Shown piece by piece: positions 1,736-40,757 of a stretch of DNA of 41,012 nucleotides. Location: NCBI RefSeq assembly GCF_001194135.2, contig NC_068983.1:161442956-161483967 (forward strand). Reading direction: 5' to 3'. This stretch comes from Octopus bimaculoides (taxonomy: Eukaryota). A model generated the notes under the pieces. That model made no database searches. It worked only from the letters and a program-made list of their open reading frames with translations, and had not been told where the DNA came from. The position numbers and the translations under genes are program-made. Numbering within the stretch: position 1 is the first letter of the stretch; every line of letters starts with the position of its first letter.

Positions 1736-1855
1736 TGCTTCCACTTCATTTCTGTAGAAGATTTGGTTGATGTTTGAAATACGATTCCCTAAATTTGGAT
1801 CTCTCGGTGCACCGCCACCAGGTCGGCCCCACACTCCATTAAAAGTGTCTTGGTG
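1736..1855 (-). CDS. Coding exon, 120 nt, phase 0/0 (HQDTFNGVWGRPGGGAPRDP...NEVEA)
   Basis: ttttccttttattaactgatag|CAC...GCA|gtaagt; open frame; GC-rich island in AT-rich intron. Confidence 0.9.
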
Positions 1856-4800
1856 CTATCAGTTAATAAAAGGAAAAGTAGAATAGGAAACACAAGTAAA
1901 TGATTGATTTGAATGAAAACAGATCGATACACGCACACGCACACATACACATAAAAAAATAATAAACCGTCAGCAAGTCAATGAACCAACGAAGGATTTT
2001 TAAGTGGAAACTTGACTTTAATAACCAAGTTTTCAACAAATCATACCCTATTCTCTCAAGAAAGTAAGGTACCTGTGAAATGTAATACAAAATACTATTT
2101 TTTAACCCAAATTTAGTTCTTATTGAGAAGATATCAAAGGTATTTCAGTCGCGGCCACCTTTTCTTTTTCAAGACTCCATTATGTAATATAACGGTTTAA
2201 AAAAAAAAAGAAAATGAATTTTAATTGATGTGAAATGTGATTCCTGTTTATATCAGACTCATTCATTATATCTCATGCTTATCATATCTCGTACATTATC
2301 TCGTACATTATCATATCTCGTACATCATATCTCGTACATCTATGTTCACAGAAAATACAGCCATGCAGCGATAGGTAGTATTTAATTCTATTGTTATTTT
2401 TTTTTCTTTGTTTGTTTAGAACTGGGTACATTGATGAACAATGTGAAGGGTTCCTACAAGACAAACCATAGTACCTTAATCTATTTTAAACGGTAGTGCT
2501 TTTTTTTTTTTAAATAGCCAATGTGATATTTGTATTCCTTCCTATCATCTCTCAATTTCCAAATCAATTGAGAGTGCTGTGTAGAAATGATGAAATGAAC
2601 TGTACATGGGACAGTTGACTTTTGACTGAAAGTTCTGTAACTCTTACCTAGTAAGTAGAAATATTTTTGTTTGCTTTATCAATGAGATATAATGCATTTA
2701 TCACTGTTTTTCCCTTACAGGGGATAGAACGCTTTATTTCGGAAAATGTATGTCAGTACTTTCTGCTTTTAGTCTGTTTGCAACATTTTACACAGTGGCC
2801 TTTATAGATTTTGAATCTAAGTCTTGTGCTGCTTATTATTGAACATTCAGGAATTTCAACCATGTTTCGTGGTCTGCTACCACAACAGCTCCTTTATAGG
2901 ATCCAGTTAGCTCAAGACATCATCAGGAGGAACCACGTCCGGTTTCGGCCCCTACTCCTCTACCGTTTTGACGTGTCGGGGCCACCCCCTTTCGGAGGTG
3001 TCTTCAGCTCTGGTGTTGGGTGCGTGGCTTCTTTCTTCTATTCCCTGGCCTCTTCGATGCAGCATCAACGAGTGTCAGCGTCCGACTGATTGTCATGTCA
3101 AATTCCCCTTTTTATACCTGCTGCTAGGCTCCAGCAGGCTGCCCCAGCAAGTTGTCACGTGACACTGTCTAAATTTCCCGCTGCTAGGGTCCAGTAGGCA
3201 GCCCCAGCAAGTTGTCACATGACACTGTCTGAACTTTAACTGACAATGGAGGGCGCAAAGCCACTTCAGTGTCAGCCTGTCTCACCTAGGCTTGTTATGA
3301 CTTTCAAGTCATATTTGGTCTTCCCGCTTCAGCCATATATAGAAGCTGGCTTTTTCGACCGCCTCTTGTATCCTCCTTATCAGTTTTCTCAGTTCCGAGC
3401 TTGAAAACATAAATCTCTTGAATAGCACCGTCATTTTCTTTTTAATGAAGCCTCTAGCCCCCACTGGCAGATGGTAGTACTCGACAGTCCATCCCTGTTC
3501 TCTGCACTCTTCGATTAGTTTCTCGTATCTCGTCTCCTTTCGTTTGGTTAATTGAAATATGATTGTTGATAAGAGAGAGGCGACTACAATAGTTTCTATA
3601 TTGACGTTACATGGTGGATTGAATTATATTATTTCCTTAGAAGATAAAACTTACTCGTTATTACGTTTAATCTAATCCTAGAATTAAACAAGTGCTTAAA
3701 GAAACAAAATTACAGCTCATCACAAGTAAAATTAAGCTACTCTCATAAAAAAAGTTTTATATTATCAGGTGAAACAACTTCGTATTCTACTGGCATAAAT
3801 GAATGCCATATATTCTTAGACGAAACACCTTAAACATAGTTGTGGAGTTCTACAATGTGACCCTGGCTTGCAGTTACTACAAAAAAAAAAGAACTAACTA
3901 TAAGAAGATGTGTATTTTAGAATCTGAGAAGATATTTCTTGGTATGCAGTGTTGACAATATCATAAATGTGTAACACAATGCACGGAGAAGTGCAAGTCT
4001 AGCGTGCATTGTTCAGGTTGCATTGATTAATGCCTATGAGCGGAAGGTTATAAGCGGAATAGGAATGTTATTACATGTGCAGAATTTTGTGTATGTTATT
4101 GGAAGCGATGGCGAGAGTATCGGACCTTGAAGTACACCAGAGATGATAGAATGAAATGCAGAAAGTAACGTCGACACACAATGCAAAGCTATATAGTCCG
4201 ATAAGAAACTTCAAAGACCGATCAAATTAGTTAGACACTTCTCATACCAGGCATAAATGAAGCTTCTTGTTGTCAAAGGCAACAACGATTATTTTGCCAA
4301 AATTCTCTTAAGTAAGAAATAACTAGTGTGTGATATAGAAAAAAAAAGACATATTTCCAGTAGATCTGGTTGTATAGAAATAAAGACATGGAAATATATT
4401 TGGCCAGAATATAGGGACTTAAAGCCGAAACGGTTCTTATGGAATGATACACAGTAGCACGACAAGATATTACGAGTATATTACGTAGAGTACTTACAAT
4501 AATAGAAAAATACAAGACATAACCAAACTTCTGTGCGCCTTTAGTAAAAAATGAGATTTCAGTAAAAATAAATAAATAATAATAATAATAATAATAATAA
4601 TAATAATAATAATAATAATAATAATAATAATAATGATAATTGCTCAATGATGCACAGTACGGTTATAAAATGTTTGATAAAAATATAAATCATCTCATTT
4701 ACATGGACGATTTAAAACTCTTTGCAAAAAATGGCCAACTCAAGGGCTTACTAGCGATTGTGAAACAATTCAGTGATGACATCAGGATGAAATTTGATCT

Positions 4801-40373: not shown

Positions 40374-40748
40374 AATGCTTCTAACTTTTACAAGCTACTT
40401 TACAGCCATGCTCTACTATAAAATTCAAAGCTACAAAAATATTTTCCATAATTTAAAGAGAAAATAACCTTTCATCTACTGGGTATTTTGTCACTAAATT
40501 TCGATCTCAAACAGTAGCAAACTTAAGAAAGCTCAATCTCAAACCTAACAGAAAAGAATCCAGAAATCAAAATAGATTGTTTAAAAGACTAGTTAGCAAA
40601 AACGCATATAACAAAACAAACAAACAAACAAGAAATTGATGAAAAATTCCTGAGTGTAAAACAACAAAGGTGTATTCGACCCATGCAAAACAAAATGAAT
40701 CCCAAAGCGCAATCACATCAGACCCAAGAAGACATGCAGAATACTTAC

Positions 40749-40757
40749 CTTCGGAAA
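40749..40757 (-). CDS. Candidate 9-nt microexon, phase 0/0 (FPK)
   Basis: ttttttacttgtgttactctgcttcag|TTTCCGAAG|gtaagtat; both splice sites near consensus. Confidence 0.6.

Follow-up and report, generated by a model that had tools for sequence, protein, structure and literature searches.

CSPP1 has been described as an intraluminal microtubule protein, with a minimal lumen-binding domain at residues 375-453 and a pausing domain at residues 706-796 of the human sequence (PMC9948759). Together with JPT1 and JPT2, it is counted among the taxane-sensitive luminal proteins; the PGGG motif of tau and the PPGGK*S motif of JPT2 mediate microtubule binding, and the taxane pocket is the proposed site (PMC12773733). 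A further report places CCDC66 beside CSPP1, as microtubule-binding partners at the cilium tip that are both bound by CEP104's jelly-roll domain (PMC12170345). Here, we investigated a 41,012-nucleotide (nt) stretch of Octopus bimaculoides DNA (contig NC_068983.1, positions 161,442,956 to 161,483,967; hereafter the window) that carries, on the minus strand, part of a gene for a protein with long charged helices and the motifs VGKPRRDP (9605-9628) and WGRPGGGAP (1805-1831). A previous reading of the letters without any searches (the sequence-only reading) had proposed a hidden gene here and had linked its last motif to CSPP1 and CCDC66. The gene is almost certainly the ortholog of Octopus sinensis LOC115209500 and a member of an unnamed helix-[WF]G[RK]PGxGAP family. 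A specific helix-plus-PGGGAP module links this unstudied family to CSPP1, which is found at the cilium tip and in the microtubule lumen and is mutated in Joubert syndrome. Both the family and the module that it has in common with CSPP1 are unstudied; the locus itself is ordinary and yields, at the level of the genome, one ordinary gene model added or confirmed.

Ten exons form a single open frame

Exons were found by scanning the minus strand for open AG...GT intervals and then placing the orthologous protein by tblastn. Ten exons of 40-132 nt splice into a single 876-nt open frame of 292 residues. All ten have an AG acceptor and a GT donor, the donor reads GTAAG in seven of the ten, and a pyrimidine tract precedes every acceptor. 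The chain is colinear with an annotated ortholog (see below). The small exons joined by the sequence-only reading do belong to one frame, and a reader without tools was able to recover them correctly. The exons and the introns at either end are as follows.

Exon 1, 38235-38185, minus strand: 51 nt, phase 0, encoding GDYRRQKWDIMGNTPKN
Exon 2, 28758-28650, minus strand: 109 nt, encoding a Q/N/S-rich disordered linker
Exon 3, 27796-27714, minus strand: 83 nt, phase 1 entry, encoding a short acidic helix
Exon 4, 26590-26551, minus strand: 40 nt, encoding NNDNETANWNSEK
Exon 5, 25470-25373, minus strand: 98 nt, with donor GTAAGT at 25372
Exon 6, 22881-22815, minus strand: 67 nt, where the conserved C-terminal module begins, with the first half of a long helix, SETMRARAARVYMEEL
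Exon 7, 20151-20090, minus strand: 62 nt, phase 1 entry, encoding KGMEEQRKKKEEMKREYNAP, the second half of the long helix begun in exon 6
Exon 8, 9664-9551, minus strand: 114 nt, encoding VGELAAVIGMGKVGKPRRDPYTGILLDNHLRTSDISKI, which contains VGKPRRDP
Exon 9, 8463-8332, minus strand: 132 nt, encoding KMGYHYPEDPQF and then the long helix KTKYCNDLISAAEERYRLRELEKLKLKQQEKQ
Exon 10, 1855-1736, minus strand: 120 nt, encoding HQDTFNGVWGRPGGGAPRDPNLGNRISNINQIFYRNEVEA, which contains WGRPGGGAP, and ending in a GTAAGT donor
Upstream intron, 38236-41012, minus strand: the three 5' exons, including an exon of isoform X1, lie beyond the window
Start of the next intron, 1-1735, minus strand: the last two exons (residues 403-453, including STHxNxYDY and the PWA tail) lie beyond the window

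The gene's first exon within the window (38185-38235) encodes residues 116-132 of the O. sinensis protein XP_036357033 with a tblastn identity of 94%. It has AG/GTAAGT sites, and the orthologous exon occupies 18375-18425 of the O. sinensis locus (L001). Exon 2 (28650-28758) is longer than its 94-nt O. sinensis counterpart by an insertion of 15 nt that keeps the frame. Exon 8 (9551-9664) is 100% identical to its O. sinensis counterpart over 37 aligned residues, and residue 38 differs (I here, S there). The sequence-only reading had paired neighboring exons by phase as 109+83, 40+74, and 67+62. The first and last pairs are exact. The middle pair uses an inner GTGAGC donor at 25396, which gives an alternative exon 5 of 74 nt (25397-25470), whereas the ortholog model has 40+98. 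Both versions are in frame; the two donors lie 24 nt apart. The GTAAGT donor of the 98-nt exon is the choice of the O. sinensis RefSeq model, in which the resulting VSSYSMRI extension is included, and two decapodiform-type transcripts retain residues within this 24-nt extension.

The window is AT-rich eukaryotic DNA interrupted by eight N runs. None of the eight touches any of the ten exons. Each maps to an exon-free intron interval of the gapless O. sinensis locus, and consecutive exons abut on the ortholog protein with no residues missing between them. Therefore, the frame is unaffected and the gaps do not hide known exons. Assembly gaps at 34328-34603 (276 N) and 35544-35849 (306 N), inside the range 1736-40757 assigned to the gene by the sequence-only reading, are absent from the program-made gap list. 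Most of the gaps are bordered by long microsatellites, such as (AC)n and (ATT)n-type runs.

Ortholog in Octopus sinensis and extent of the gene

We searched protein databases exhaustively with HMMER, using a spliced peptide of five exons as the query (the five-exon peptide below). The search matched XP_036357033 of O. sinensis in one colinear stretch at E = 1.8e-101. This protein is annotated as "uncharacterized protein LOC115209500 isoform X3" and has 453 amino acids; RefSeq lists isoforms X1-X4 of 437-476 amino acids (XP_036357029-33). A word-indexed protein search with a 40-residue exon peptide and a 164-residue spliced peptide gave no matches, which reflects the sensitivity limit of the index because the exhaustive HMMER search found an 84%-identical protein. 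By tblastn, all ten exons fall in order on residues 116-402 of XP_036357033, with identities of 86-100% in nine exons and about 56% at the divergent 83-nt exon and its flank. Overall, the two proteins are 94% identical over 287 aligned residues, with 17 amino acid differences. The ten orthologous exons share the same splice positions, and the 15-nt in-frame indel in the 109-nt exon is the sole difference in length.

The O. sinensis locus L001 is gapless, and the gene spans 43.4 kb there in 15 exons. The window is colinear with it, introns included, at 88.9% nucleotide identity over 23 kb. However, the introns are longer in the window, where the shared exons are spread over 36.5 kb; in O. sinensis the figure is 26.7 kb. 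The extra length consists of insertions, retroelement fragments among them. Residues 1-114 of the ortholog, the 23-residue exon of isoform X1, and the C-terminal 51 residues (403-453) were each sought in the window, with no match. Window position 364 corresponds to L001 position 47548, about 3 kb before exon 14 (50537), and window position 40971 corresponds to L001 position 15948, a point 714 nt beyond the X1 exon. At the low end of the window, exon 10 stops at a GTAAGT donor, so the gene continues past the window start.

Of the gene's 15 exons, ten internal ones lie in the window; the gene is incomplete at both ends and larger than the window. The sequence-only reading had drawn a 40-kb gene from 1736 to 40757; the part of that range from 38236 to 40757 is intron. 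A coding exon in this part was considered and rejected, as the stretch aligns to an O. sinensis intron. Nor is the gene hidden, since it was already predicted in the sister octopus species with four isoforms, and its existence is not new.

The C-terminal half is under strong purifying selection

We compared the coding sequence with that of O. sinensis using the ratio of non-synonymous to synonymous substitution rates (dN/dS). The last five exons (165 codons) contain 12 synonymous and 4 non-synonymous differences, for a dN/dS of 0.083. The first five exons (122 codons) contain 4 synonymous and 14 non-synonymous differences, for a dN/dS of 0.82, and they also carry the indel. The synonymous divergence (dS) between the two octopus species is about 0.10-0.12, near the divergence of the flanking introns (~10%). 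Purifying selection on the last five exons is strong, and the first five are nearly neutral.

Complete open reading frames (ORFs) of 466 and 484 amino acids were found in other cephalopods, on intronless contigs of 1.9-2.4 kb assembled from public runs. They cross the same exon junctions without insertions and show 68% identity to the five-exon peptide. These contigs are best read as spliced mRNAs because the genes are about 40 kb long. Judged from such comparisons of sequence, the minus strand of the window carries a protein-coding gene that is spliced and functional.

An unnamed family with repeated helix-plus-motif units

The HMMER search with the five-exon peptide gave 91 representative relatives, and a profile search gave 216 matches. 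The named matches are nearly all called "uncharacterized." They cover many bilaterian phyla (molluscs, annelids, nemerteans, a brachiopod, flatworms, and an acoel; echinoderms, hemichordates, amphioxus, and a tunicate; chelicerates, insects, and a copepod), together with cnidarians and one filasterean, Pigoraptor. Among the named matches, no vertebrate member was found apart from fish cspp1a. Chiton, limpet, nemertean, annelid, and oyster proteins match at E = 1e-38 to 1e-20 over roughly 140-150 residues. Example members are Lingula LOC106159339, Crassostrea LOC105318289, Strongylocentrotus LOC756624, Nematostella LOC5514059, and Branchiostoma XP_066301208. Some relatives carry automatic names (trichohyalin-like, SRRM1-like, and ZC3H13-like) that reflect low-complexity charged sequence only.

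Full-length members have 600-850 amino acids, with a conserved N-terminal region, long charged alpha-helices alternating with a Gly/Pro-rich motif, and a PWA tail. The number of G-x-G-A-P motifs per full-length member has a median of five. Over 235 instances, the motif consensus is Y-[DN]-P-[WF]-G-[RK]-P-G-[GA]-G-A-P-x-[RK]-[DT]-x-S-G-x-x-x-T. The window protein shares with the family a colinear C-terminal arrangement of a helix, VGKPxRDPxTGxLL, a YHxDLxxxAEERxRxRxLEKLK helix, and WGRPGGGAP. In a 22-sequence alignment, the invariant positions fall on both motifs: G184, P186, D189, and T192 on VGKPxRDPxTG, and G265, G267, A268, and P269 on the last motif. A homologue search with the spliced peptide had been proposed as a check by the sequence-only reading, and it confirmed that the relatives carry the motif. 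The family's C-terminal S-x-H-x-N-x-Y-D/E element and PWA/PYA tail are also present in the O. sinensis ortholog, as STHQNCYDY...TPWANFY. The segment VGKPRRDPYTGILL may be a shortened copy of the motif unit, as it can be aligned by eye with GRPGAGAPRRDEEGRILT minus the G-x-G-A-P core.

Pfam-A scans of the exon peptides, the spliced peptide, and the 91 relatives matched no model except CSPP1_C in the fish CSPP1; this includes tubulin-binding models, which gave no match in the family members scanned. Sequence searches of the PDB with the peptide and with the family profile gave no relative. Ferritin and beta-lactamase matches at E = 0.04-1 were rejected as noise. A literature search on the motif strings and the family LOC identifiers found nothing relevant. 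The family is unnamed, without a Pfam model, widely conserved, and unstudied.

A reduced form in the cephalopods examined

The cephalopod proteins examined have 437-484 amino acids and one canonical G-x-G-A-P motif, the last. The window model likewise has one canonical motif, in place of the several that are typical of the family. Full-length members have a conserved N-terminal region and four or five motifs that are missing from these cephalopod copies; one copy keeps a vestige of that region. All that O. sinensis retains of the first motif is a degenerate YPWGTTIGKF in isoform X1, in an exon beyond the window. The short acidic helix of exon 3 (27714-27796) is what is left of the helix found before the third motif in full-length members, and the third motif itself has been lost.

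The cephalopod copies examined are a reduced, lineage-specific form that still belongs to the family. They keep the constrained C-terminal unit, consisting of a helix, VGKPxRDPxTG, a helix, WGRPGGGAP, and the PWA tail. Their upstream repeats have degenerated and now form a disordered linker that evolves fast. This stripped-down copy shows which part of the protein is indispensable, namely the last 165 residues (dN/dS 0.08). Arthropod relatives (mayfly, sandfly, stick insect, and copepod) are also short, with 320-450 amino acids and two or three motifs; these take the form WG[KR]PGxGAP toward the N-terminal end and WGRPG[HY]GAP toward the C-terminal end. Their size and motif number suggest that the family has been reduced independently in several lineages, in arthropods as in cephalopods.

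A module shared with CSPP1

One characterized protein, CSPP1, shares the helix-plus-motif module. An hhalign comparison of the family profile with fish cspp1a gave a probability of 97.8% and E = 6.8e-13 over 51 columns, and phmmer matched residues 89-157 of the five-exon peptide to the same protein at E = 5.9e-7. In both cases, the likeness consists of a long charged helix followed by a motif, which in fish cspp1a reads YNPWG[KR]GGGGAPx[KR]DxxGNL; the CSPP1 segment equivalent to the family motif is YNPWGKGGGGAP. The exon 3 segment (27714-27796) is also placed opposite the CSPP1 helix by hhalign. One helix-plus-motif unit of the family is homologous to a unit in vertebrate CSPP1, and the presence of the motif in CSPP1, as stated in the sequence-only reading, is borne out.

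Beyond this module, the two differ. CSPP1_C (Pfam PF24578) is found in fish cspp1a at E = 6.1e-26 and in none of the 90 other representative relatives, including O. sinensis and full-length members; the C-terminal exons lie outside the window. Against the 2452-residue fish CSPP1, hhalign aligned nothing beyond the 51-column module, and nothing over the microtubule-binding (MTB)-like or C-terminal regions. CSPP1 is much longer and has one motif per unit, whereas the unnamed family has several motifs per protein, and the C-terminus of fish cspp1a is without the conserved PWA tail. Placing the octopus protein as an invertebrate member of a CSPP1-type motif family, as was done from the letters alone, captured the shared module and was otherwise too narrow, as the gene belongs to a separate, unnamed, multi-motif family. 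A 2026 CSPP1 preprint contains no evolutionary or motif discussion.

In the fish record used here, cspp1a of Parambassis ranga (2452 amino acids), the helix-motif unit recurs in four tandem copies of 263 residues that are nearly identical, and many near-identical REPSPPIPTHQR repeats come after them. This arrangement looks like either an expansion in tandem or an artefact of assembly or annotation, and it inflated the search score of the record.

CCDC66 is like CSPP1 in being a CEP104 partner that binds microtubules at the cilium tip (PMC12170345). However, no CCDC66 protein occurs among the named matches, and the Pfam-A scans described above gave no CCDC66 match in family members, exon peptides, or spliced peptide. 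On these searches, membership in CCDC66 was rejected, and they do not support the link to CCDC66 that the sequence-only reading had drawn. We take the Pfam scans to include the CCDC66 model, accession PF15236.

Predicted structure and a possible mechanism

We ran AlphaFold2 on the O. sinensis ortholog, which stands here for the window protein. The model predicts four long, confident helices joined by low-confidence linkers, with no globular fold (predicted local distance difference test [pLDDT] 58, predicted template modeling score [pTM] 0.21). The helix at residues 348-390 is predicted with a pLDDT of about 90, and both motifs are modeled as unstructured or weakly hairpin-like. The order of disordered linker, helix, VGKPRRDP, helix, and WGRPGGGAPRD, as laid out in the sequence-only reading, agrees with this model. 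Its description of the helices as coiled coils was overstated. Charged residues or Q make up 53-59% of the helices, and hydrophobic residues occupy at best 36-50% of the heptad a/d positions; a true coiled coil is not established. A Foldseek search of the PDB with the ortholog model gave a single meaningless match (E = 8.7).

The constrained C-terminal unit comprises two long helices with a Gly/Pro-rich loop after each, and its homologous counterpart is a unit of CSPP1, a protein of the microtubule lumen. The motif also resembles the PGGG motifs of tau, MAP2, and MAP4 and the PPGGK*S motifs of JPT1 and JPT2 (Jupiter), in that these are short, repeated Pro-Gly-Gly-Gly loops in unstructured or helical proteins. 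In contrast, the family flanks its loop with W/F-G-R/K before and A-P after, and the likeness is one of analogy, not homology. The window protein could be a microtubule-associated scaffold, plausibly centrosomal or ciliary. Its helices would lie along the lattice or space out the protein, and its PGGG-containing loops would contact tubulin in the manner of the tau and JPT2 repeats, possibly from the lumen, as reported for CSPP1. We offer this mechanism tentatively, as a possibility that falls short of probable.

Several points weigh against a microtubule role for the motif. The homology to CSPP1 is confined to 51 columns, the likeness to the tau and JPT motifs amounts to four residues, and no PDB match was found by sequence profile or by fold. 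CSPP1 constructs without linker L5 still bind microtubules (PMC9948759). In fish cspp1a, the motif comes directly behind the second of the helices that follow the MTB-like region, which most likely puts it at the start of L5; the microtubule-binding and pausing domains of human CSPP1 are helices that most likely lack the motif. Therefore, the motif is probably not required for microtubule binding by CSPP1. Finally, the cephalopod copy may work differently from full-length members, because it has lost most motifs and its first half is near-neutral (dN/dS 0.82).

Alternative explanations

One alternative is that the exon chain consists of open AG...GT intervals lined up by chance, or that it is an artefact of the assembly. 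In its favor, AT-rich sequence commonly contains short open intervals, with 476 candidates on the minus strand here, and the window has eight gaps. The match to an independent annotated protein at E = 1.8e-101, the identical exon boundaries in a gapless genome, and the restriction of the gaps to introns refute this, and we regard its probability as negligible. A different concern is that the cephalopod copy is decaying into a pseudogene, a relic that is still spliced but has lost its function, along with its N-terminal domain and four or five of its motifs. Its size (437-484 amino acids with one canonical motif, against 600-850 amino acids and a median of five elsewhere) would fit, as would the dN/dS of 0.82 and the 15-nt indel in the first five exons between the two octopus species. 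Nevertheless, the frame is intact, all splice sites are conserved in both species, dN/dS is 0.083 over the 165 C-terminal codons, and complete ORFs with 68% identity to the five-exon peptide persist in more distant cephalopods, which makes a relic highly improbable.

The strong module match (97.8% probability) and the position of fish cspp1a as the only vertebrate protein among the named matches could also mean that the gene is the cephalopod CSPP1 ortholog and that the whole unnamed family is invertebrate CSPP1. We consider this very unlikely, given that CSPP1_C occurs in fish cspp1a and in none of the other 90 representatives, that the single hhalign match covers 51 columns with nothing over the MTB-like or C-terminal regions, and that a median of five motifs and a PWA tail set the family apart from CSPP1, which has one motif per unit and, in fish cspp1a, no such tail. 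The most serious competitor is that the family has no microtubule role at all. The protein would then be a generic disordered scaffold (nuclear, RNA-associated, or structural), or its motif a peptide that docks onto a partner, for example the jelly-roll domain in CEP104, which binds both CSPP1 and CCDC66 (PMC12170345). The lack of a Pfam, PDB, or fold match agrees with this, as do the automatic names that reflect low-complexity charged sequence and the microtubule binding of CSPP1 constructs that are missing the linker in which the motif most likely sits. On the other hand, the sole characterized protein with the module is a microtubule-lumen, cilium-tip protein, the motif contains the PGGG used by two other microtubule-binding proteins, and several regularly spaced copies per protein suit lattice binding better than a single docking site. 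A family without a microtubule role seems somewhat unlikely to us. Taken as a whole, an orthologous gene that is a reduced family member and would act as a microtubule scaffold is the explanation we prefer, and we hold it to be fairly probable.

A bolder proposal is that the helix-plus-[WF]G[RK]PGxGAP unit is an unrecognized tubulin-binding, possibly luminal, repeat of an ancient holozoan microtubule family. This we judge unlikely. If it were true, CSPP1 would retain a single copy and cephalopods a minimal one-motif version, the motif in the CSPP1 linker would also be functional, and the family would be a missing cilium or centriole component in most invertebrate phyla. Tubulin binding by the module would provide a new microtubule-binding repeat and a handle on an unstudied part of CSPP1.

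Other elements in the introns

Several further elements lie within the introns. They are listed here with the open stretch near the window start.

Zinc-finger ORF, 31911-32219, plus strand: 102 amino acids, two C2H2 zinc fingers (Pfam zf-C2H2, E = 1.5e-9)
Retroelement remnant, 5433-5975, plus strand
Retroelement remnant, 34637-35011, minus strand
Retroelement remnant, 18472-19359, minus strand
Open stretch, 986-1237, minus strand: 84 amino acids (…NKIQGQSLKIVGLHL…YAGCSRAGNGNNLFML…)
Short interspersed repeat, minus strand, several copies, including 740-898, 22446-22658, and 40139-40342: translates as …YRPRKDE/QRQSRPRRN…

Part of the 31911-32219 stretch is without a counterpart in the O. sinensis intron, and the ORF is probably a piece of either a zinc-finger gene or a mobile element. 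Two of the three retroelement-remnant ORFs gave weak matches to zf-RVT, the zinc-binding region of reverse transcriptase (E = 0.034 and 0.0044, below the cut-off); the third reads like the C-terminal part of a long interspersed nuclear element (LINE) reverse transcriptase and runs into a gap. The remnants lie in stretches absent from the O. sinensis locus and so account for part of the greater intron length seen here. The open stretch at 986-1237 gave no Pfam match and presumably resembles the C-terminal end of a PIF1/Helitron-type helicase. The copy of the interspersed repeat at 40137-40370 matches L001 at 5488-5722 and 36917-37079.

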